A DNA stretch of 63,790 bases, filler included, from Octopus bimaculoides (lineage: Eukaryota): NCBI RefSeq assembly GCF_001194135.2. It is 6 parts of 6 records of this genome, joined end to end, with 100 filler letters (N's around TTAATTAATTAA, not from the genome) between each part and the next. Parts side by side here need not be neighbours in the genome. Positions count along the whole stretch, not along the records: positions 55,786 to 61,507 come from NC_068988.1; 5 more parts are not named here. One strand, written 5' to 3'. A program made the translations under genes and the position numbers. The notes under the pieces are model-generated. The model saw only the letters and a list, made by a program, of their open reading frames with translations. It was not told the DNA's origin and did no database searches. The number at the start of each line of letters is the position of its first letter. The stretch's first letter is position 1. This document shows positions 9,261 to 63,016 of the stretch, in pieces.

Positions 9261-10476
9261 TATGTTCAATTGCAAAAAGCTTAAATAAATAGATTACACC
9301 TATTAATTTATGTATATAGCAGAGACAGTTAAGGATAGTAATTATTTGCTGGTGAAATCTCAGCATACGATTGACTCTGAGCTGGGTTATTCTACTTTTT
9401 TCAGTCCCCGAGGTTATCGTCGATATGTTTATATATACAGTGTAAGATCGCCTTTCGTACAGTTTGTACATTCTCGTGTAATCCCAAGCGCTCGCACACA
9501 CACACGCGTGCGCGCGTACACCTGTATTTTCACAAGAAGTGAGACAAATCTATTTACGTTATCAGTAAGCTGATGACACTTCTGTCCATTACTAGGGGAG
9601 TCTTTGCTTACGTGATGTTCATAAAACTGGTCTAATTAATATCCGAAACTGTTAGCACAGAGTTATTGTGCAGTTTCTACAAGAACCGAGTCACAACCAT
9701 TATGATCTTCGTTACCAGGCAGCTTCATTATAAATGTAGGAAACAACAAAGCCAGTTGCTATTCGCCATATCTGTATTTCTACCCAAGGTTTTTCACATT
9801 GTAAACAGGAAACTTTCTGGAATGTTCTCAGAAAGTTCTCACGCTCACTTTGACGTTTTTCGGGAAGTCAGCGTTTCTATTTTTCTGCACGGGTGCAAGA
9901 AATAGACCACGTACAATCGACACATTAAGACGCAAGAGACATATATCCAGCATCCCAAGGTGATCCTGTCATTTACATGGTGAGATAGTATGACACAAAG
10001 ATCTCGTAAAGTTCATTTTGAAGAGACGCAACATCCACCCATTAAGGCCGAAAACATCACTAGCGTCGTTCATTTCGGCGATCTCACTGTTGGAGTGGAA
10101 CTGAAAATATAGAGGCTAAACAGACTTAGTACTACCAAGAGAAGTGGGAAAAGGAATGCGTACAAAGGAATACTTAGCGTTTGCGACTAAACATTTGCAT
10201 ATCCTGTCATCGATCAAAACGGCACATCAACGTTTTGGACATACAATTATCAAAGTATCCACAAATGAAGATGGTCATGAACGAATTCAATGGACACACA
10301 TAGGTAAGAAGTATGTGTCTATGTGTGTGTACATATGTCTCTGTATATTCATGCATACAAATTAATAATAAAAGGGTAAAATTAATCAATTAAATTTATT
10401 AATCAATCAATTAATTAATAATTTTACCAAGTAGATCGGTACGTTAAAATAACCTTTATAGGTAAAATTATACAAA

Positions 10477-24749: not shown

Positions 24750-25130
24750 TATTCATGGCTGTATGGTTCAGAAGTTCGCTTCGCAACCACGTCGGTTTGG
24801 GTTCAGTCCGGCTCATTGGGCAAGCGTCTTTTACTATAGACCTGGACCGGCAATGCCTTGTGAAGGAACTTGGTTGACGGAAACTGTATGGGAGCCCATC
24901 GTGTATGCGTGTCGTGTCTTTGTTGTTATCACACCGCCTGACAATCAGCGTTGGTTTGTTTATGTCCCTGTAACCTAGCGCTTCGGCAAAAGATAACGAT
25001 AGAACAAGTACTCTATTAAAAGAAAAGTATGAGTACTAGGGTCGGTTTGTTTGACAAAACCCTTCAAGGTGGGTCCCCGCATTGCTGCCATTCAATGACT
25101 GAAACAAGTACAAAGATAAAAAAAAGAATA
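24750..25130 (+). mobile_element. SINE family B, diverged
   Basis: Shares head, gggcaagcgtcttttactatag, cttcggcaaaag and aatgactgaaacaagta blocks with the other copies. Confidence 0.7.
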
Positions 25131-31723: not shown

Positions 31724-32099
31724 GCAAATCCATATGGTGTGAATTTCAAATTATGCAATCTTTGTTTAAAAGTGACTTTGTGTATATTACTGTCCATAGA
31801 ATGATTAATTAGCAAGTATTCGGAGCTTATTATGAGATATAAGCATATATTTAGAAGCACATTCAGGAAATACAGGAAGAAATTATTCCATTGAGACTGA
31901 TTAAGAGATTTAGAGATCTAAACGGTATTTCAAGAATAAATATTTGGAATAAAATATATGATATGATATACTATACTATACTATACTATACTATACTATG
32001 CTATACTATGCTATACTATACTATACTATACTATGCTATACTATACTATGCTATACTATACTATGCTATACTATACTATACTATACTATACTATACTAT
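31467..32099. repeat. (CTA)n (gap-interrupted) and (CTATA)n/(CTATG)n microsatellites
   Basis: 31467-31722 is (CTA)n/(CCA)n; 31968-32099 is a pentanucleotide array. Confidence 0.9.
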
Positions 32100-32589
32100 N
32101 NNNNNNNNNNNNNNNNNNNNNNNNNNNNNNNNNNNNNNNNNNNTTAATTAATTAANNNNNNNNNNNNNNNNNNNNNNNNNNNNNNNNNNNNNNNNNNNNA
32201 CGAGCAGAATTACAGAGGTAGCATCATAGCCATGTGTCGAGAGGAATTCTTTGGGGGATTGAAATAATTCACCTCTGGTAACATGGGTGCTTTGTTCATC
32301 ATCCTTAAACAATCCTTATTCAAGGACCTTTTGAGCAGGATGGGCTACTCGACCTGGAGAAAATTCTAACTGGGACCCACCTACAAGGTCATGCGCTATT
32401 TATCTTGATATAAGATCACCATATCATGCACATATGGTCGTGATGCATGCATCTGGTATACTCTTATCAGACGGGTAGTCATGATGGGTATACTGGGCTT
32501 TGTATGTTTTACTCCAGTGTCACTTTGATGGCATGCACTGCTCTCTCACTCAATAAAAATAAAATTTCTCCTAGCCAAGAGCCCACTGG

Positions 32590-32660
32590 TGAATGATGAA
32601 GGAGCACAGGTCACTTGTGGATCTGGCTTTATAAAAATTGTACCTGGTGATTGATAAGGG

Positions 32661-32697
<37 letters not shown>

Positions 32698-33450
32698 TCA
32701 AAGAGGATGTTAGTCTTAATGTCTGTCTCCATTACCTTAGAGACATTAGAAGTGAGTATAATTGGCAAGGTCAGAAGGGCTCTCTTTCTTGAAGATGGGA
32801 CACAGTATAGCATGTTTCCAAAGATCCCGAGTAAGCCACTGTAGAGAGAGTAGAGAGATTGAAGAGTCTGGTATGTATAGGGACTAGCTCTGTGTTGCAG
32901 TGTTTGAGGGTAATGGAAGTGTCACCATCATGTGTAGTGGTCTTGTTAACTTGAAGTGACTAAAGGTACTTTTGCACTTGTCACATGTTTATGCAAGATG
33001 ATGGAGCTGGAGGAGTGAAAGGGGATAAAACTGAAGATTTGTCAAGTGTGTGTAGTGTAGAGTTGGTTGTAAAGGAGACAGTGAAGCAGGTGGCTTTCTC
33101 TGTTGTGAATTAGAAGGAAAAAATGGGATTCTGCAAAGGTGGTGAAAATCCTTTTGGTAAGGTACCAAAAGGGTCAGCTACAGTTTGGAAGCTTGGATGA
33201 CTTTGAGAGATGTTCAATGATGCAGTTATCTTTCAAGAATCTGATAGTGGCCTTCTGGATATTGTGTTGCATAAATGCTTCCTAGCTTTTAGGGTAAGTT
33301 TCACCAAACATAGTAGGTTTTGTTTTTAGCCTGAATAGTTCCTGCACAATTATAAATGAACTACTTGGTGGACTTATGGCCTTGGATTTTTTTTATGTGC
33401 ATAGGATGTGGAGGGTCATACCTAGAAGGATAGTTTCAGTGTGCAGTTGG
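32590..33450 (-). mobile_element. Decayed CR1/Jockey-like LINE reverse transcriptase N-terminal region
   Basis: The minus strand reads across frameshifts as ...LKHCNTEL...TRLFNLS...WKHAILCPIFKK...LTSNVSKVME (compare LK.CA.EL...L..LFN.S...WK.A.V.PI.KKGD..NYRPISLTS..SKVME). Confidence 0.6.
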
Positions 33451-49870: not shown

Positions 49871-51501
49871 CATACATATGGTCTATCATTGTCCTATTGT
49901 AGACTTAGATCAGATAGAAGAACAGAAGATATAATCATTTGTGTTAGACATTTGCAAAAGTAGTGCATAGGAAAGATTTCACAGATTTCTAAGTATTCTT
50001 TGATCTAAAAGAAAATGATTTCTTAAGTGAATCCCAAATCAATGCGAATTATTTTGGAAATTTCGCCATGCAAATCCCATTTGTTGCTTTAACGCCTGCG
50101 TTCCCATATTAATGACGAGCTAACTGAACTAGAATAGTGCGCTGGTGTTTTCATTAGAAAACATTTAAAATGGCTCTCCACATGTTCCACAATTCGTAAT
50201 ATTATTACATTTAAGAACTGTGATCTAAGAATATTTGCCGACAAATTTTGCATCGTTTCCAAACTAGAAAAAATACACACATATACACTACGTACACCTA
50301 TATTTTATGTGTGGCATGCTAATGATTGTAAGTTTGAGGCATACTCGATGTAAAGTTTATAGAAAAATATTGAAACATGTCTTCGGCATTTTACATCTGG
50401 GCATGAAAATAACTATTTTCGTACCTACTTAAAGATAAACATATCTGGGTGAAACCAAATTTATTTGTTCAATGAACTATAAGTGATGTGGGGGATTCAT
50501 TGGTCTATCACGGAAACCTGATAAAGTAAAAAGTTTGACTCTGTCAGGAACATTGTGGAAACTAGTTTGGTCAAACAGGGTCTTGAAACGGTCCACCAAA
50601 ATTTGCATCTAAGACATTTGCGTCACAAAATTTGTGTAACATTCATTTTAGATATGTATCTATTATAGATGATATAACAGAATTTTAGAGAGGTTTAAGA
50701 TGATAGGTTAATTATGTATTGCAAACATTACATAGAAATCTTTTAGAAGTGACCAGAATTCTTGGACAAGGCGTTGTGTCTCATAATATTCAACTCACTT
50801 CATCAAGGAGCATATGCAGTGAGTTAGTCATATCGCATAACTGGGGGACTTCAGATTTTCGAATCTGTAACTCTATGAATAATATATATCAGATGCTTGT
50901 ATTTAGATGTCTTGTGTTTACTCGCTTGATTTTATCTCGTATATTTATATCATCTGACTCTAATTTACAGTTAAAAGGTTATTTTTCAAATTACAAAGTT
51001 TAGTCATAAAATATATTGATAATTCAATTTATGGTCGCTTATATCAAGATGGATTTTTCATTCTAATTTTGCCTTGATAAATACCCTCTCAAAAATATTG
51101 CCTACTTTATGTTTTCGGAAACTACAGTCAACTTCCATTACATATTACACTAAAATAAGCAAAATACTATGTGCTGATATACATATAAACACACACACTG
51201 TCACACATTTACACACAAACTTACAGACTTACACACACACACACGCGCACATGCGGACGAACATTTATATGTATTTATGTATGTACAGACGTTCTTATAG
51301 TCGTGTATATGTTTTAGTGTGTGACGATCTCTGGTTTTGTGCGTGTATGAAATATATAACATATCAGTAAAACCAAATACATCTACACAGTCACCGAAGT
51401 ACAAAGACGCAGACAAATTCGCATGCAGCGATACATACATACATACATACATACATACATGTACATATATATACATATACATACACATTTAGAAATGTGT
51501 G

Positions 51502-51533
<32 letters not shown>

Positions 51534-51758
51534 NNNNNNNNNNNNNNNNNNNNNNNNNNNNNNNNNNNNNNNNNNNNNNNNNNNNNNNNNNNNNNNNNNN
51601 NNNNNNNNNNNNNNNNNNNNNNNNNNNNNNNNNNNNNNNNNNNNNNNNNNNNNNNNNNNNNNNNNNNNNNNNNNNNNNNNNNNNNNNNNNNNNNNNNNNN
51701 NNNNNNNNNNNNNNNNNNNNNNNNNNNNNNNNNNNNNNNNNNNNNNNNNNNNNNNNNN

Positions 51759-51791
<33 letters not shown>

Positions 51792-54700
51792 GCATCATAA
51801 TAATCTTCTTCATCAATGTCGCTTTAAACCAAATTTAGAATATTTACAAATATTGAACGTTGATGGGAAGTCATTGCTGATTTATTTGTTTTGATTCTAA
51901 AAACATTAAAGACAAACTTAGATTCATTGCCAATCTTAATTATCTCAATAACCAAGTTTAATGTTAATTTGTTTTTGTAGTTTTCTAAATATACTACTCT
52001 CACCCATCTTCTAATATTTTAATGTCTGGACGTATGTACATTTTAGATTGAATCACATTGTTTCTCATTAATTCCGCACAAATAATTACTGGTTTGAATC
52101 GTAGGAACACGTTGAGGCTGTAGTGCATTATTGAATAATTTTAGTCAATTTTATATACTAAGGTACTGTAGCAAGTACTTTATTTCGCGAATTACTAGCG
52201 TCTACAAAAATTCTGTTAATCTGAACGATACATGGTATTTCTTCTATATACACGTGTGGTAACACATCGGAAGTTATATTCGAATAATATTCAAATATGA
52301 AAATATATCTGAACTATTGTTAGGACGTAGAGGACTTTCCTGTTTCTTTAAGGTAAGTTATTTTGGAATTTAAAAATAAGTCATTATTTGAAACTTAGAA
52401 TCGATGTAACGTAGCTATAGGTTCATATTCGAAACAGCTTTCAATTTAAAAAAAAAAATGACAACTTAATTTAACTTGACAAGGGATTTGTACATGTGTC
52501 CTCAATTATATACCACCATACATATTGTCCTAAGCTTTAATTTGTGAACTCTACAAGGTTTCTCAAAATTAAGAGCTACTTTCAAGTAAATGACCTTAGT
52601 GTAGACAAAGAGTTTGCTTTCAAAGCTCTTGTGTTCATGCTGCAGCTCTTTTGAAACAATTGTTGCCATGTCGCATTGGAAGAAGTTGCTGATCTTAGCT
52701 CTTACCTTCATCGATCTTTATGCCTTATCTAACTATGTGAAATGTGATGGTAATGCTTTTGATGTAATTTGGAATCCTAACCGGAATTTGAACACAGAAA
52801 GAAAACTGATTGAATATGTTCCGTGACAAGCATTGCGAGAACAGCTTTGAATTTCTCAAATTTTCCCAGTCTAGAGTGACTATATATTTACTCCTGAAAG
52901 TGTAAAAGATAAAATGGACCTCGGATTGAGCGAAACCTGCAACACAGAAAAATAAAAGTAATATTGCAGAAAGTACTTTAAAGATACATTCCTCGCAAAA
53001 TCAGGTAAAGGAAGATGAGAAAACTTTAATGCAACTTTTGTATCGCTTTACCGAAACAATGAGACCAAGTCAGCATCTTCCCGAAACAATAATTACATTG
53101 CCATATATCAACAAGAATGTGCTTGTAACTTCAAAGAACCAAGAAATGGTACTCGATGCCTCCATATTCATATTATTTAATAGTGATCAGACCTCATTAA
53201 CTTTAAAACATAATGAGTACATAATTGATAATACAATGTTTGTATGTAATTGATTTTTAAGGCTTTAATGAAAGTGAACTGGTGATGTGTCTGAATCGGA
53301 TATTAAATGTTTACCGATACAACTTCTGAGAGTTGCAGATTGATCAGTAAAATAGTGTCCTTCAATGTCTCCGTGTACATCAATTTTTATATTTATGTTG
53401 CCAAGGGTGATTAAACAGTGTTTCTGTTTACAGATTCAGTATAGTTTACAATCTGAGGTCAACTGTTTAAATATATACCTATTAAAAGCCGCAAATACAT
53501 TTGAAAACTCACCTTTGTTTAGATACTGTTTCAGTTTGATTGCACAGAATATCATGTATTTTTATATATGCTCGGAATAACAGTACATTCAAATTACATG
53601 CACACTTACAATGTTAAAGTCTTTGAAATAAGGAGAATAATTTGACTTTGATAAGAGTCTTTTTATGCATATCTTGCTTCAGTCCCTTGCAAATCGTTTG
53701 GGATTTCAAATAATCTACTATCGATATTTATAATTCATCAAAGCGTCACTCTCAGGGCGAGATTATGTCAGTATATGCTCATTGTATAGTATCCTGTCGA
53801 AATGTGACTGGCGAAAATTTATCGTCTAAGTATGAATGATAGCTTTTCGTTTATACACCAAGGGATAAGCGTTGCTTTCGCTTTTGATTAGCATATGTTT
53901 ACCATGTTTAGTGATGCGTATGCCATAAATACTGACTCCATTTTAATCGACTATTTTATTAGTAAATCTGTAGTGTAAGTATGCGCACTCCACAAACTCG
54001 ATAGAGCATAGCAAAATCAACTTGTTGCTATTGCCTCGTGAAATGGTAGTCAAGTTATCGTACATTTATAACCTTGATATATAAATGTTTATGGTGTTCC
54101 TTGAATACATAAATCCTATTGTTAATCAGTTGCATTTCACATGTTTACATGATATGAATAAGAAGGATTGAGATTTAAATATTTTTTTATCGGAACATTA
54201 TATAGATAAAGAAATCCGAAGATTAAACGAAATCTAGACAACAATAGCTAAGCTAACAAAGTAAAAGAGAAAACGACAGAACAACAGAGGCAAACAAATA
54301 AACGGTGATAGATGCATCCAATACCAACCTTATTATGAATAAGCTACATACATACACGCAAATATATAATATGAACTGAGTATGGAATGTCTATAAGATA
54401 GATTAATACAAGACCACGAAAAAAGGCGGTAAAGCAGAACATTAACTAAAATATAAGAAGAGAAAAAAACTATAAAAATAATAAAGTTAAAATCGTTCTT
54501 ATTAAGACAAACTGACACAAAGATATGTACCATCGATATTAGAGTCGAAATGTGAGTATATCAGTCTTCTTATGTATATTCATTCTATCGAAAATTCTAA
54601 ATAATTCAGTTATTTCGTGGAAACTTTTAAATTTAATAATAAGTACTTTATTCATAAAGTTACAGTTTAATAATCGCAATAGGAAGTAAAATTATTAAAG

Positions 54701-55316: not shown

Positions 55317-56328
55317 GTCTATCTATCTAGCTAGCTAGCTAGCTAGCATCCGTCTATCTGCATCTAACAACATCTGTAGTATACAATAAAGTAATTAATT
55401 CTTTAGCTACAATTTAAATCCTTAAAACACTGGAAATACATTTCATGAATAAAAGTATCGCATTGCTATGAATATAATAAATTGTATATACTTTTTCAAT
55501 GTAAGCCATTTGCAGTTCTTGGAACTAAAGCGGAAAATTAATACCAACTAAACCAGCGACCTGCCTATGTATGTAGTACCTTCCTAACCTAATGTGCATA
55601 TGCATGTATATATCAACGTATGCGTTTATATGTTTATAAATTCAGTTGTTGATGTACATCATATATACAGCAACAAATATATATANNNNNNNNNNNNNNN
55701 NNNNNNNNNNNNNNNNNNNNNNNNNNNNNTTAATTAATTAANNNNNNNNNNNNNNNNNNNNNNNNNNNNNNNNNNNNNNNNNNNNATATATATATATATA
55801 TGCATATATATATATATATATGCATATATATATATGTTACACGTATAATTCATTGTTTTTATTAAATTCGTATTTTTATAATTATTCATTATTATTTAAT
55901 TTTCTTTCAGCTTTTACATATTTTATCACAGACACTCTCTATATAAGTTTACGTATGTCTATAAACGCACGTACGCTTTCACGTGCGTGCATGTATGAAA
56001 GTACATATGTATAAGTATGTATACACAATATATTCATTATATGTATACCATAAGTATATCTAGAAAGAGTGAATGTCCCATTGTGTATGTGTGTGGTTTT
56101 TTTTATAAAGGCGTGTATGTTTATATATACGTTTAGAGACATCCTTTTTACTATACTAATTATATTACAAAGTGAATCAGCCATCCCGTTTTGGTTTTCG
56201 GGAGACATATTGGGCCCATCTGATGTATATACTAATGCTTAATTTTTTTCAGCACAATTAACCTGTTATATACTCCTTTATATAAATATTATTTTCTATC
56301 AATACATTTCCAGTTTTAAATAACTAAA

Positions 56329-57097
56329 AGTTATTTAAAACTGGAAAGGGAGGCTCTAATCTGTGCTGCCCAAGAGCAAGCACCAAGAACAAACTACGTA
56401 AAATACAGAATAGGCAGCATAGCAGAAAGTGCTAAGTGCAGAATCTGTGGACAAAAGGGTGAAACCGTATGGCATATTACCAGCCAATGTACGCCACTAG
56501 CCCAGAAGGAATATAAGAGACACCACGACAATGTAGCCAGGCTTGTCCATTTCACACTTTACAACAAGTATGCATTGACAGAGCAAACAATTGGTACGAC
56601 CACAAACCTGAAGGTATTGTCGAAAATGGAAATGCAAAGATCCAGTGGGATTTTATGATTCAGTGCGACCATGAGATAGAGAACAGGAAACCAAACATAG
56701 TTTTAATTGAAAAAGAAAACAAACTATACTGGATCATAGATATAGCATTCCCAGCTGACCACAATGTATGCGAAATGGAAGAAAGAAAATTCGATAGGTA
56801 TGACAAATTGGCTTGGGAAGTAAAGCGGTTGTGGTCGATGAAAAAGGTAGTAGTAGTACCAATAATTGTCGGAGCCCTGGGAACATTGACCAAAAATCTC
56901 GAGAAGTACGTGGAACAAATAGGGGCTGCAATAACTGTGGAGCACTTGCAGAAAACAGCACCGCTTGGAACTGCTCGAATACTCCGGAAGGTACTGGAAA
57001 AATAAGAGGTGTTACCTTAATTCACTGGTAGCTAACAGCTGTCACTGTAGTACATCTCCAGCGTTAGAAACTATGAAAAGGCAATTATAATAATAAT
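56329..57097 (+). mobile_element. R4/Dong-like non-LTR retrotransposon 3' fragment (CCHC knuckle plus restriction-like endonuclease), ending in (TAA)n
   Basis: ALICAAQEQA..., KCRICGQKGETVWHITSQC, HDNVARLVH, then ORF 56655-57005 with RKPNIVLIEK..WIIDIAFP, KFDRYDKLAWEVKRLW, VVVPIIVGALG and LGTARILRKVL. Short 3' UTR followed by taataataat at about 57085-57097. Confidence 0.85.
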
Positions 57098-57148
57098 GAC
57101 ATCGAAAAATACCTTAGGAATGAGAACACAGGTACGCAATTTCTTCAA

Positions 57149-57194
57149 GACACCTGATGAAGGCTGGAGGGTATATCAGCCGAAACGTTGTGTT
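57149..57194 (+). ncRNA. Minimal type I hammerhead ribozyme (PLE-type, second family)
   Basis: Stem I GACAC/GUGUU; core CUGAUGA(57154-60) plus one extra A; stem II GGCUG/CAGCC with a 10-nt loop; GAAA(57182-85); palindromic ACGU stem III; GUU cleavage triplet (after 57189). Confidence 0.75.
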
Positions 57195-57453
57195 AGCAAC
57201 AAACAAGATGAGGACAAATGTCCGTCAAATATAAATAATGTAAATAATGTGCATAATTCCTTATCTCTTAAATGTAGAATTGTATGTTTGTGGTAGTGAG
57301 CTGGTTTATCAAATATATTTTGTATTGGACGATATGCTGGAAGTGTTCCTATTTCTAATGTTGAATTAGATTTATTTTATTAATATTTATGAAGTTCGTG
57401 TTGATTTCGCCCAGTGCAAGCCTCCGCATCGCTGCGACATCGACAGTATCTTG

Positions 57454-58034
57454 GGATCTTTTTTAAAACGGGGGCCACATTTTTCATTAACGAAACACTT
57501 TGAAACTTGGAACACTGGTAGAATGTGTCATATAAAACATCTTTTTCTCTTAGTCTTCTTAAAAAAAAAAAGAAATCCATAAGTTATTCCATGTTAAAGT
57601 TGTCGTATTTCTGTAATTTCAACCAATCACTGACGTCCATTCAGCCGATATACATTAAGTGCCAACTACATAAACAAACGATTCTGAAACAATTAACCCT
57701 AACCCTAACCCTAGGGTTAGGGTTAGGGTTAGGGTTAGGGTTAAAGCAAATTTAAAATGAAAAAAGCAAATAAAACGAAGGTATGGAGATTAAATACGCT
57801 TTACATCGCTTAATCAGCCAAAGGAGTAAATATAAACAACTGAATACTTGTCAGTGATTGGTTGAAATTATCGAAATAAGACAATTTTTTACATGAAATA
57901 AATTCGAATACAAAAATATTTTTCTGTTCTATAACACAAAATAGATAAGTATACGAAGTTTGAAAGTCTTTCCGTACCAAAAACACTACGTAAAACATTA
58001 ATGAAAAATGTGGCCCCCGTTTTAAAATAGATCC
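57454..58034. mobile_element. 581-bp non-autonomous DNA transposon (MITE/fold-back) with 37-bp TIRs, 8-bp TSD and a central telomeric palindrome
   Basis: TIRs 57454-57490 and 57998-58034 match at 36/37. TSD GTATCTTG at 57446-57453 and 58035-58042. Inner inverted repeat 57585-57645 / 57840-57900 with a perfect 21-bp core. (CCCTAA)n-(TTAGGG)n at 57693-57744. An 8-bp TSD is typical of hAT or P superfamilies. Confidence 0.88.
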
Positions 58035-58708
58035 GTATCTTGTACTGCATCAGATTTTCCATGAGATAGATTTGCTGTCCTCTCGCTGAGACCTGAATAA
58101 CTGAAGAAAAAGAAACTGCGAGGAGTGTTCAAGCCTCAGATGACATGATATAGTTAGGACGATTTCATCAGCGTTGGGGAGGGAGGAAGAGGGAGAGAGA
58201 GAGAGGGGGGTGGGGAAGAGGGATGACACTGTATTCCAGCATTAGTCTTGTAATTTACTTAACTCAGAAAGGATAAAATGTTAGATTGACATTGGATGAA
58301 TTTCAATTAATAAGCGTGGGCTGGTGTTTAGGAGGTTGTTCGCCGGTGCCCAAGTTCGTGGTTCTCACTCTCCGTATCCGTTGACAAATGTGACCTTGAG
58401 TAAGGGCAATGCCTTTCGAGTTGCTTCAGATGAATCATTTAAAGCTTAGTAACACTCGAATTGTAATGCAGCCTTTTAAACTCCCACCTGTCACATTCTC
58501 TAGTTCCACCAGATGTATCGGAGGAGCTGTGAAAATATGTCTTTCTTTGCTTACGATTACATAGTTACTTAAACTAATAACCGAACACTTACTATCAGCC
58601 ACCAAGATATAAAACTTATAATTGGCAGCTCTGTTTGATTTCGTTAGTTTCCTAAAAATGCAAATATTAGACAGAACTGATATCAAATAATTATCATATA
58701 AATCTTAC

Positions 58709-59659
58709 CGATTTATTTAAACGAATTCCTTTCCAAATTATTATGATCCCATTCACGAAAGAACTTGATGCGGCAGATAATAAGTAAATGAATTTATATA
58801 ATCTATTTTCGTATGATACATTTATAATTCCGTAAGTTGCAATACAACATCCTGTAACACTGCCAAGTACGATAAATGCTGTGGACAAACGTAGTGATTC
58901 GTTGAGTAATTCCAGCATTCTACTTAGAGCATCATGAGTTTTACATATTTCTGTAATCTCTTTCTCTTTCTCGAAGAAAAGAAACTTCTCTGATTGCTGT
59001 TCCTTTACATAGCGTTGACCATCATTCGTCACTTTGTTAAACTCATAAATGAGTGTACTTCCGATCATAAGGTTTACGTACAAGTCAAATTGCAGCAGAC
59101 CGAATGATATGTTGTTAAATGCAGTAAAAAGTGTGAAAAGTAGAAAGTGATAATTATCGTTGATCGGTTCAGAAGAAAGAGTGACAGGCATAGTAACATG
59201 ACCGGACAGTGTAAAAATATAATCTTGAATAGTGTAAACAATTAGCGGCAAGAATATAAATAAGCATAGTGATTTATATGAAAAGAATATATTAGAGTTA
59301 TAGAATTTACTATCATCTTCTTCAATTTTAAGTTCGGTGAATGTTTCAATTAGTTGTGTGTCGTTCGGTTTCTTGAAGAGTTTCATCAGACCATACACTG
59401 TGAAAAAGCACTGGTAATATATCATGTAGATATTTAAAAGTGTTTCATCAGTTGATCTATTTTTCATTTGTATGGTAACAATAATGTACCAAATTGGGGC
59501 TACAATCAAATATAAGCAGTACACTGCGTAAAAACTATAGAAAAAGATTGAGATAAATTTGGGAGATTTTAATGACGATATATTCGCAATCGATATCCAA
59601 AAATTTTTTTTACGATAAAGTTCCAGCAATTTAAAGAAACGTGTTTCATTTGATTTCAT
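58709..59659 (-). CDS. Large first coding exon (317 codons) of a gustatory receptor-like / 7TM ion channel (GRL, 7TMIC; 7tm_7-like) protein; C-terminal TM7 exon(s) not located
   Basis: Only long non-repeat, non-TE ORF in the window (58694-59659). ATG at 59659 has an in-frame TGA 13 codons upstream. Six hydrophobic segments: FISIFFYSFYAVYCLYLIVAPIWYIIV; LLNIYMIYYQCFFTVYGLM; SLCLFIFLPLIVYTI; FLLFTLFTAFNNISFGLLQFDLYVNLMIGSTLIYEF; STAFIVLGSVTGCCIATYGII; FIYLLSAASSSFVNGIIIIWKG. The long amphipathic helix before TM5 (EITEICKTHDALSRMLELLNES) resembles the GR-family pattern. The frame reaches TCG|GTAAGA (donor GT at 58708-58707, phase 0) right after TM6. Family call is by pattern recognition; no HMM was run. 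Confidence 0.75.
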
Positions 59660-60197
59660 GCTTATTCTAATTTCGTGACTTCCAGAAAATTCTTCTCATT
59701 TAGCAAACAAAATCCTTAGAATAGAAGAAGCAGGTTTTATATGTTAATGAGTTTAATAGTCCCTGTATGTGGAACTTATAATATAAATCATTAAAATCCA
59801 GATATACAATATTGACGGATGCTTGATATTAATTTTGATATTTCATATAGATAACGTTTCACTGGAGAAAAAGTATCTGCGATTAAATTCTGAGGAATCA
59901 CTAAGATGCTAATATATATGAGCTCCCATAGAGATGTTAGATTGTTATGGGTAAAAAAAAAATGTTGCATATAATTTGCTCCAAAATATATTTTCTATTC
60001 AAAAGGAAATAGATTTGATTAACTTCGGTAAGATGTATGGACTGTCGACTGTATACAGTAGTTCAGTTGTCTGTACGATTCAATTTGTAATCTATGAAAA
60101 AAAGCTAATGTTATTAGTCCTTATATTCGATAAATATGCGTTTGTACATGTTGCTTTCCAAGTGTTACCTACATGCTGCTCTCATTACCTTCGTATA

Positions 60198-60252
<55 letters not shown>

Positions 60253-60561
60253 NNNNNNNNNNNNNNNNNNNNNNNNNNNNNNNNNNNNNNNNNNNNNNNN
60301 NNNNNNNNNNNNNNNNNNNNNNNNNNNNNNNNNNNNNNNNNNNNNNNNNNNNNNNNNNNNNNNNNNNNNNNNNNNNNNNNNNNNNNNNNNNNNNNNNNNN
60401 NNNNNNNNNNNNNNNNNNNNNNNNNNNNNNNNNNNNNNNNNNNNNNNNNNNNNNNNNNNNNNNNNNNNNNNNNNNNNNNNNNNNNNNNNNNNNNNNNNNN
60501 NNNNNNNNNNNNNNNNNNNNNNNNNNNNNNNNNNNNNNNNNNNNNNNNNNNNNNNNNNNNN

Positions 60562-60623
<62 letters not shown>

Positions 60624-63016
60624 GCACATGTATCTATAATATCATATATATATATATATATATATATTTATGTATTTATATATACATAAGTGTGTGTGTG
60701 TGTGCGTGTGTGCATGTGTGAGTGTGTATGTGTGTACGTGTATGTGTTTGCTGCGACGAGGAGCTTTTAATATGTAATTTCCGTCGTTCAGGGACAGAAT
60801 TTAATGCATTTACGTTATGTTAACCGTCAACATGCTCCTCGTGCATAAAGCATTAATGTTCAATACATTTCAATGTTTTATGCTAGCAAAACAAATTATT
60901 TCTGTTGGTAAATGGATATGTGTACTTAAATCATTAGTACATTGGATTGGCATATATTGATGACATGAGAGTAGTTGATATTTCTGAACCCTAACTAAGA
61001 ACATATAGGAAAGAATATATGTGAGTGTGTGTCTGTGCACACACACACACACACAACATATATCTCAATGGCTGTAGAAAATTTGAAATTTATTTATACC
61101 TTTTTGTTCATATATATAATAGGCGCAGGAGTGGCTGTGCCGGGATCAAATCGGGCCGGAGTACCGTTGTGGCCTGAAAATTTGTTAATGAAATAAAGTA
61201 GCATTGCTTACCGAGAGGACGTGATTTTTGTCGCTCCTGTTGTCACGTCGCTGAATGCCAGCGTCGTGAATTTTTGACGTACAACTACAGGTAAGACTTT
61301 CGTGTTTTTAGGATTTATATCTCTTTATTACCCACTAGGGGCCAAACATAGAAAGGGACAAAACATCTGATTGGGGTCAGATAACACGTATGGGGTTACA
61401 AAAATATGAAACAATTAAAAATATAATAAAATCGAAAATCGAATGTTTACAACAAACAACACACAAAACAATATAGACAGATGAAGTGGGGACTGGGTTA
61501 CGCTCCGNNNNNNNNNNNNNNNNNNNNNNNNNNNNNNNNNNNNNNNNNNNNTTAATTAATTAANNNNNNNNNNNNNNNNNNNNNNNNNNNNNNNNNNNNN
61601 NNNNNNNTAAATTAAGTACCAGTTGCATACTGGGGTCGATCTAATCGACTGGCTCCCATCCCCCAAAATTTTGTGCCTTGTGCCTAGAGTAGAAAGAATA
61701 ATCTATACTCTAGAGTACTGATGCTAAATATCTTTTGTTCAGAGATTTACAAATAGTAATTTCCTATGCTTGTGTGTGTATATATATATTTATGAATTTG
61801 TATGATTGTGGATAGAAGAATATATTACTCAATGAAATTCCAACTTTGTCTGATATTCACATTTTATTATTTCCAATTTTTCCAAGTTAACAATATTGAA
61901 ATAAACTTGTACCTGCATGCATTACACAATCATCAGGTTTATGTAGTGACAGTCATGTTCCACAATTGACAACTTGTCAATTGTGGGACAGTAAAAATTG
62001 GAAATAATAAGATGTGAAAATCAGACTAAGTTGGAATTTCATTAAAATATATATATATATATATANNNNNNNNNNNNNNNNNNNNNNNNNNNNNNNNNNN
62101 NNNNNNNNNNNNNNNNNNNNNNNNNNNNNNNNNNNNNNNNNNNNNNNNNNNNNNNNNNNNNNNNNNNNNNNNNNNNNNNNNNNNNNNNNNNNNNNNNNNN
62201 NNNNNNNNNNNNNNNNNNNNNNNNNNNNNNNNNNNNNNNNNNNNNNNNNNNNNNNNNNNNNNNNNNNNNNNNNNNNNNNNNNNNNNNNNNNNNNNNNNNN
62301 NNNNNNNNNNNNNNNNNNNNNNNNNNNNNNNNNNNNNNNNNNNNNNNNNNNNNNNNNNNNNNNNNNNNNNNNNNNNNNNNNNNNNNNNNNNNNNNNNNNN
62401 NNNNNNNNNNNNNNNNNNNNNNNNNNNNNNNNNNNNNNNNNNNNNNNNNNNNNNNNNNNNNNNNNNNNNNNNNNNNNNNNNNNNNNNNNNNNNNNNNNNN
62501 NNNNNNNNNNNNNNNNNNNNNNNNNNNNNNNNNNNNNNNNNNNNNNNNNNNNNNNNNNNNNNNNNNNNNNNNNNNNNNNNNNNNNNNNNNNNNNNNNNNN
62601 NNNNNNNNNNNNNNNNNNNNNNNNNNNNNNNNNNNNNNNNNNNNNNNNNNNNNNNNNNNNNNNNNNNNNNNNNNNNNNNNNNNNNNNNNNNNNNNNNNNN
62701 NNNNNNNNNNNNNNNNNNNNNNNNNNNNNNNNNNNNNNNNNNNNNNNNNNNNNNNNNNNNNNNNNNNNNNNNNNNNNNNNNNNNNNNNNNNNNNNNNNNN
62801 NNNNNNNNNNNNNNNNNNNNNNNNNNNNNNNNNNNNNNNNNNNNNNNNNNNNNNNNNNNNNNNNNNNNNNNNNNNNNNNNNNNNNNNNNNNNNNNNNNNN
62901 NNNNNNNNNNNNNNNNNNNNNNNNNNNNNNNNNNNNNNNNNNNNNNNNNNNNNNNNNNNNNNNNNNNNNNNNNNNNNNNNNNNNNNNNNNNNNNNNNNNN
63001 NNNNNNNNNNNNNNGT

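Follow-up and report, generated by a model that had tools for sequence, protein, structure and literature searches.

The window analysed here is a stretch of 63,790 nucleotides, and the exon under study lies at 58709-59659, in a piece of 5.7 kb within that stretch. An earlier note on this DNA had described a stop-free exon of 317 codons at this place. We found that its coordinates are exact and its frame is open, and that the gene is encoded on the minus strand; translation of the plus strand over the same interval meets many stops, so that reading was rejected. The minus-strand ORF runs from an ATG at 59659-59657 to a TGA at 58696-58694 and comprises 321 amino acids, and its codon 317 (TCG, in the context …GIRLNKS) has its last base at 58709. 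No in-frame stop is present where about 23 would be expected (2000 shuffles of the exon averaged 23 stops, and the lowest count was 12), and the other five frames of the exon contain 18-29 stops each. From base composition, the probability of an open frame of 317 codons in DNA of 31% GC is about 3e-11, which argues that this is a real coding exon rather than a chance ORF. The features of the exon are collected in the table below.

Coordinates of the features assigned to the exon (positions along the window)
Feature	Position	Strand	Basis
Long coding exon, 317 codons, ATG through TM1-TM6 of a gustatory-receptor-like protein	58709..59659	-	open frame and end-to-end family alignment (residues 1-317)
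Start codon	59657..59659	-	Met column common to paralogs starting M(K/N/Q)xxET(R/Q/E)F
Phase-0 splice donor GTAAGA directly after codon 317 (…LNKS, then gtaaga)	58703..58708	-	sequence; position kept in relatives
Tentative upstream leader	59660..59730	-	alignment with upstream regions of O. bimaculoides exon v3 and Logan contig L007
TM1, residues 36-62	59474..59554	-	AF2 helix 34-67; hydropathy peak 2.19
TM2, residues 73-95	59375..59443	-	AF2 helix 70-95; weaker hydropathy, under the cutoff used
TM3, residues 127-150	59210..59281	-	AF2 helix 128-151; hydropathy peak 1.9
TM4, residues 170-199, helix extending into the cytoplasm to residue 221	59063..59152	-	AF2 helix 169-221; hydropathy
Cytoplasmic extension of the TM5 helix, residues 229-257, EITEICKTHDALSRMLELLNESLR	58889..58975	-	AF2 continuous helix 229-279
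TM5 membrane part, residues 258-280, with conserved CCIATYGIIN	58820..58888	-	alignment, AF2, hydropathy
TM6, residues 288-310, helix running on to residue 316	58730..58798	-	AF2 helix 287-316; hydropathy 1.85

The start-Met column is identical in four members of the family alignment (P0008, P0009, P0013 and P0015). At the other end of the exon, a phase-0 donor just after TM6 had been proposed, and GTAAGA indeed follows codon 317 at 58708-58703. The long exon of every homolog ends at the same aligned position and is then followed by GT, and the donor position is the same in four intact O. bimaculoides exons and in genomic contigs from the Logan collection.

Upstream of the ATG, a block of 17 nt (59660-59676, ACGAAATTAGAATAAGC) is near-identical in the window, in the O. 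bimaculoides long exon v3 and in a Logan contig; the sites compared were 59660-59730 of the window (minus strand), 24960-25004 of the O. bimaculoides locus (L005) and approximately 400-440 of the Logan contig (L007). In all three, a pyrimidine run followed by AG/G stands 35-58 nt upstream. In the window the run and its AG fall at 59715-59730 and tentatively resemble a splice acceptor. By its sequence, this element looks like a conserved candidate splice acceptor upstream of the long exons, so a non-coding leader exon may precede what appear to be first coding exons. A k-mer search for a promoter motif common to all of the long exons gave nothing convincing.

The piece extends 2.9 kb downstream and 1.8 kb upstream of the exon. 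The earlier note had described these surroundings as transposable elements and microsatellites. The microsatellites are present, as (TA)n, (AT)n and (GT)n repeats accompanied by an assembly gap of 309 N, whereas the transposable-element part comes down to one TE-like ORF. This ORF, of 116 amino acids (…VVPIIVGALGTLTKNLEKYVEQIG…LQKTAPLGTARILRKVLE; 56655-57005, plus strand), has no significant Pfam match; it may resemble the conserved C-terminal tail of marine-invertebrate retrotransposon proteins. The run of N spans 60253-60561 and interrupts a long stretch of (TA)n; it is bordered by (TA)29 and (AT)63, with (GT)n next, and marks a gap in the assembly within a microsatellite, 0.5 kb from the exon leader on its upstream side. 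About 1 kb downstream of the exon, within the would-be intron, a telomere-type repeat is arranged head to head (57695-57745), with (CCCTAA)3 abutting (TTAGGG)5 in a near-perfect palindrome; it could be an interstitial telomeric sequence or the end of a mobile element.

We searched the 5.7-kb piece by tblastn with the constant (TM7) exons and all family members, and found in it no credible TM7 exon and no second long exon. Two weak candidates were set aside as chance matches: a possible last exon at approximately 57915-58062 (GATFFIN... / TYLFCVIEQ), which needs a frameshift and has E > 0.4, and a marginal match at the edge of the piece (61422-61502, E 0.015).

The exon aligns end to end with a small, Octopus-only family at 35-43% identity, with E values of 1e-40 to 6e-65. 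The best relatives are P0001 (E 6e-65) and P0002 (O. bimaculoides XP_052825892, E 1e-54). A word-indexed protein search with the exon returned two matches, and an exhaustive HMMER search of 1.84 billion representatives found 16 family representatives, 8 at E < 1e-30, 29-49% identical to the window exon. Further word-indexed searches with the family alignment and with the 71-residue constant region added almost nothing new. Two species account for the named members: O. bimaculoides with LOC106880719 (isoforms X1-X3), and O. sinensis with LOC118764607 and LOC118764608, each annotated as ‘uncharacterized protein’. All others are ORFs in short genomic contigs of the Logan collection that derive from a single sequencing project (SRR118693xx), and their frames continue past the same GT donor. 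Beyond the Octopus group, no homolog reached E 1e-3 among 1.8 billion representatives, which marks the family as a fast-evolving, lineage-restricted branch. No sequence in the collections searched is 50% or more identical to the window exon, and the exact ORF is also absent from them; exact-sequence queries with P0002, P0010 and P0016 likewise matched no record.

Compared with O. bimaculoides LOC106880719 (XP_052825891/2) and O. sinensis LOC118764607/LOC118764608, the window exon is colinear over its whole 317 residues. The position of the start Met is the same in most paralogs, the conserved blocks are the same (the window retains LIYEFNK, ITEICxTHDxLS, LNESL, CCIATYGIIN and GIRLNKS), and the same phase-0 donor follows ...LN(K/R)S. 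One difference lies in TM1, where the window has APIW and most relatives have NPIR.

We also considered where in the family the window exon belongs. Its identity to the four intact long exons of O. bimaculoides is 38-43% in each case, like the distance from paralog to paralog, and its nearest partial matches (P0001, P0006, P0013 and P0016) are absent from the O. bimaculoides cluster. Because the window is as far from the exons of that cluster as these are from one another and lies nearest to members outside it, it represents a paralog lineage that has not been recorded. The sequences suggest that the window exon and P0001, P0006, P0013 and P0016 form a subgroup absent from the O. bimaculoides locus, and the window exon may possibly come from a second cluster. 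Some other relatives look damaged: P0009 and P0012 are frameshifted near the end of the long exon and carry SSFKQIGKFYK-type tails, and P0014 is a scrambled fusion with unrelated sequence, which hints that copies have decayed, or were misassembled, in the Logan species.

If the window exon belongs to the gustatory-receptor-like (GRL) superfamily, a profile match to Pfam 7tm_7 (PF08395) might be expected from the exon or from its full-length relatives. With hmmscan, neither the 321-residue ORF alone (E up to 10) nor a construct in which the window exon was joined artificially to the constant exons of O. bimaculoides matched any Pfam family. The exon is without TM7, a region that carries much of the 7tm_7 profile signal. 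The full-length homolog XP_052825891 (P0018, isoform X1, 390 aa) does match 7tm_7, with 31.6 bits against a gathering score of 26.6 (E 1.4e-7), and the match is colinear, from residues 41-388 on profile positions 33-367 of 370. Isoform X2, with 14 residues fewer, scores 25.1 bits, just under the cutoff. The window exon in turn matches exon 1 of XP_052825891 over 317 residues at E of about 1e-55 to 1e-64. Because the window exon has no direct Pfam match, its membership rests on transitive homology and predicted fold; the 7tm_7 profile that the earlier note had named for a check is matched by the homolog and not by the exon by itself.

The constant C-terminal region of the relatives (…GGCFVITPSSTLTMLGSFITYILVVIQTKSL), taken alone, gives weak colinear matches to the C-terminal ends of 7tm_7 and Trehalose_recp, and their last exon carries TYILVVIQT, which fits a TYxxxxxQ motif. 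TYxxxxxQF is a conserved motif of GR TM7 (PMC6150509); the octopus constant exon ends the motif in T, in contrast to the F of insect GRs. In RefSeq these relatives already stand as ‘uncharacterized protein’ with an automatic 7tm_7 tag.

We next turned to the predicted fold. With the family alignment as input, the AF2 model of the window exon has a pLDDT of 78.5 and a pTM of 0.79; a model of full-length P0002 has a pLDDT of 73.5 and a pTM of 0.71, with TM7 poorly modelled. The ten best Foldseek matches of the window model in the PDB are exclusively AgOR28 (AgamOR28), ApOR5-Orco, Orco, MhOR5 and Gr43a, all at probability 1.0, with TM scores of 0.48-0.55 and rmsd of 6-9 Å over approximately 280-340 columns. 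BmGr9 and AaegOR10 (TM 0.59) stand lower in the same list, and the top seven matches of the full-length homolog are likewise OR/Orco structures (TM 0.48-0.59). Against GPCRs the window model scores only 0.14-0.19, and against ABC transporters 0.28 or less. The Foldseek E-values are modest (approximately 5e-3 to 5e-2), but the ranking is unambiguous: Orco and BmGr9 had been named for this comparison, and OR, Orco and GR structures come out on top, with no GPCR or transporter fold among them. Profile searches of PDB sequences with both family alignments found nothing at E up to 10, so only the fold comparison links the family to solved GR/OR structures. Insect GRs (Drosophila Gr43a, Bombyx Gr9), derived ORs and Orco thus share the predicted fold at TM scores of approximately 0.5-0.59, at a sequence identity of about 10-13%.

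The six TM-like segments that had been noted correspond to six helical hydrophobic segments in the AF2 model. Hydropathy agrees for all of them except TM2, which falls below the cutoff. An amphipathic helix had also been placed before TM5. The ICKTHDALSRMLELLNES stretch on which that was based is present; rather than a separate helix, it forms the cytoplasmic extension of a long TM5 (229-279). This extension is the best conserved block of the family, with the consensus ITxICNTHDxLSxxLxLVNESL. In OR and GR structures, long extensions of TM4-6 build a cytoplasmic anchor domain, and the octopus TM5 extension is like these insect features. Lysine and arginine are strongly skewed, with 23 on the N-terminus and the loops 2-3, 4-5 and post-6 against 3 on the loops 1-2, 3-4 and 5-6, which predicts a cytoplasmic N-terminus and the inverted topology of GRs and ORs; an intracellular N-terminus is what the earlier note had expected. 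NxS/T sequons occur at N67 and N280, inside or bordering predicted outer loops. The protein encoded in the window is therefore predicted, from its sequence, to have an inverted topology with its N-terminus inside.

Taken together, the end-to-end homology to a family with a member that passes 7tm_7, the OR/GR fold, the charges that place the N-terminus inside and the phase of the intron bear out the proposal of a divergent GRL. We are highly confident that the exon encodes TM1-6 of such a protein.

If TM7 is encoded elsewhere, the one relative locus read in this analysis should indicate how. The locus of LOC106880719 in O. bimaculoides (69 kb of CM046608.1, 34% N) holds a gene that spans 49 kb. 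We found five tandem long exons on the same strand, between 10001 and 38189, with starts at 10001, 16612, 25005, ~32039 and 37212 and a spacing of 6-8 kb. Four of them are intact and the fourth is broken; the intact ones end in …L(N/H)(R/A)(S/T/A) followed by GT, and the long exons are mutually 43-47% identical. Downstream lies one same-strand set of three short exons at 56117-59274 (56.1, 57.2 and 59.2 kb), with all introns in phase 0. These exons encode VHSITQSIHFMQFQDIKQEVIAK / ILVFLNRLTTESHGIDVGGCFVITPSSTLT / MLGSFITYILVVIQTKSL (…TYILVVIQTKSL), which is the TM7 part of the protein. The arrangement that had been expected, a long 5' exon followed by a phase-0 intron after TM6, matches this relative, in which three phase-0 introns near the C-terminus stand at places that correspond to the window donor after codon 317. 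With insect GRs the octopus relatives have in common the TYxxxxxQ motif of their final exon as well as the three phase-0 introns towards the 3' end.

Two features of the O. bimaculoides locus deserve separate description. In the fourth long exon (32003-33058) the ORF is cut off after 131 codons, although tblastn still finds similarity as far as 33058; this points either to a pseudo-exon or to an error in the sequence. In addition, a second, inverted set of TM7 exons lies at 50545-52809 on the minus strand, approximately 97-98% identical to the set at 56117-59274 on the plus strand. It reads MIGSF… where the other reads MLGSF…, is 3.3 kb from the first set and points away from it, adjoins a gap of 100 N and has different intron lengths. 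O. sinensis also has two variants of the constant exons. The inverted set could be a genuine second constant set, or else stem from an inverted contig or from a haplotype left uncollapsed in the assembly.

Two arrangements of the gene in the window can be derived from this relative. First, the window exon could be one of several long 5' exons that share a set of TM7 exons. In the RefSeq model of the O. bimaculoides locus, the first long exon is joined to the 3' set across 45 kb and the other four are skipped, and in O. sinensis the annotation connects the counterpart of the second long exon, an ortholog with 82% identity, to constant exons. The 3' exons hardly differ from paralog to paralog or from species to species, in contrast to the 43-47% identity of the long exons, and divergent long exons combined with near-identical 3' exons are the pattern expected from sharing. 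Second, the window exon could belong to a stand-alone GRL gene that is not part of an array and has TM7 exons of its own, at least a few kb downstream and beyond the end of the piece. Flanking sequence in the piece amounts to 2.9 kb on the downstream and 1.8 kb on the upstream side, which leaves room for such a gene, and at least two constant-exon sets occur in both O. sinensis and O. bimaculoides, so 3' sets do duplicate. The runs of N that make up 34% of the O. bimaculoides locus could moreover hide further 3' sets, private to some of the long exons. Against a stand-alone gene stand the five long exons that precede one same-strand 3' set, the annotated transcript that skips four of them, and the sharing pattern itself. 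We consider a stand-alone gene possible and somewhat unlikely; by analogy with the O. bimaculoides locus, we lean towards placing the window exon in a cluster of alternative 5' exons.

We next asked if the exon is still in use. Its open ORF could instead be an orphan or recently dead exon that is no longer spliced into a 7TM product because its 3' exons or promoter were lost. In favour of this, the piece is without TM7 exons, the family sheds members (one of the five O. bimaculoides exons is broken, and P0009 and P0012 look frameshifted), and the dN/dS of the family is fairly high, at 0.4-0.6. For orthologous long exons of O. bimaculoides and the Logan species, dN/dS is 0.62, 0.64 and 0.42 at dS of 0.29-0.53, so the long exons of the relatives appear by their sequences to be under purifying but relaxed selection, which is usual in families of the chemoreceptor type. 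Comparisons of the window exon with its paralogs gave dN/dS of 0.46-0.59 at dS of 0.7-1.0, near saturation. No ortholog of the window exon above 43% identity exists in the collections, and all dN/dS figures for the window are therefore from paralog pairs. Intactness is the main argument that the window exon is alive: 317 codons without a stop in DNA of 31% GC have a chance probability of only about 3e-11, and the start Met, the consensus blocks and the GTAAGA donor are all kept. We therefore regard a dead or orphan exon as improbable, and consider it likely that the exon is functional and spliced to TM7 exons outside the piece.

Finally, that this is some other multi-pass protein (a GPCR, a transporter or a TE- or virus-derived ORF), GRL-like by hydrophobic composition only, is very improbable indeed: the window exon lacks a direct Pfam match, PDB-sequence profile searches were empty and AT-rich coding DNA does yield proteins rich in I, L, F and Y, but colinear homology over 317 residues (E 1e-55 to 1e-65) to a family in which one homolog passes 7tm_7 over its full length, Foldseek TM scores that reach about 0.5 for OR/GR structures, at probability 1.0, and stay at 0.28 or less for GPCRs and ABC transporters, and an intron whose position and phase match the family all speak against it. 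The GPCR, ABC-transporter and TE-ORF readings were rejected on the basis of fold and homology.

The explanation that we prefer is thus a GRL TM1-6 exon of an octopod-type family, spliced to TM7 exons outside the piece and likely a member of an array, and as a whole we think it very probably correct. Transcription would run along the minus strand, and the phase-0 donor at 58708 would be spliced to short exons beyond the 5.7-kb piece, which would supply the last cytoplasmic loop and TM7. The product would be approximately 375-390 residues long, with its N-terminus inside the cell, and by fold homology four such subunits would assemble into a ligand-gated cation channel. In insect ORs and GRs the TM7 helix lines the pore, and in the solved structures the ligand pocket sits in the TM1-6 bundle. 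If the analogy with the O. bimaculoides locus holds, the window exon would belong to a tandem series of long 5' exons that are used in a mutually exclusive way; each would encode its own TM1-6 bundle, and all would share the TM7 exons. One locus would then produce a set of receptors that differ in their ligand pocket and share a pore helix.

Such a layout has a counterpart in flies. For the Drosophila Gr39a locus, the published description is of alternative long exons for the N-terminal part and a common set of three exons for the C-terminal part (PMC3011837). The O. bimaculoides locus has the same layout, with tandem long N-terminal exons and then three short C-terminal exons, and unlike in Drosophila GR loci its introns are tens of kb long. 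It is in this relative that the Gr39a-type layout was read; the window piece holds one long exon and no 3' exons. Gr28b and Gr23a are further alternatively spliced GR loci of Drosophila. The Gr39a-like layout in octopus probably evolved independently.

The GRL family is ancient and widespread, and its non-arthropod members often have roles other than chemosensation. GRLs are known across protostomes, including molluscs (PMC7746228; PMC5850775), and in the surveys consulted molluscs are represented by Aplysia, not by cephalopods (PMC5850775). The GRLs of Aplysia and other molluscs, Nematostella Grl1, those of Trichoplax and the gur/lite-1 genes of C. elegans belong to the same superfamily as the window protein. 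A literature search found no paper on cephalopod GRLs or on an octopus GRL cluster. Because the only relatives of the window exon form a small, unstudied octopus gene family, it is a new, unrecorded member of a known receptor family and not a new kind of receptor. GRL roles include development, as for NvecGrl1 (PMC5850775), so chemosensation is not a given for octopus GRLs, and a chemosensory role of the window-encoded protein is one that we infer.

Cephalopod contact chemosensation is currently explained by chemotactile receptors (CRs) derived from nicotinic receptors, which are pentameric, nicotinic-receptor-like channels (PMC12635824). The earlier note had set its candidate apart from these Cys-loop receptors, and rightly so: the two are unrelated, and the window protein has instead the 7TM GR/OR fold, so that their likeness extends only to candidate status as ionotropic chemosensory channels. 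A wider proposal would be that one or more octopod GRL loci combine a dozen or more alternative long 5' exons, the window exon among them, with near-invariant TM7 exons, that the resulting ligand-gated channels are expressed in the suckers, lips or olfactory organ and form a second ionotropic chemoreceptor family, and that this layout arose independently of Gr39a/Gr28b; we think it unlikely that all of this holds. If it did, octopuses would possess, beside the nicotinic-type CRs, a second family of ionotropic chemoreceptors with varied pockets and one pore helix, and their design would be a second, probably independent, case of variable exons beside fly Gr39a/Gr28b. The combination of variable TM1-6 exons with near-invariant TM7 exons is also a natural experiment that separates the parts of a GR that set ligand specificity from the parts that form the pore. 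The rapidly evolving octopus GRL family is thus a candidate for further chemosensory or other sensory channels.
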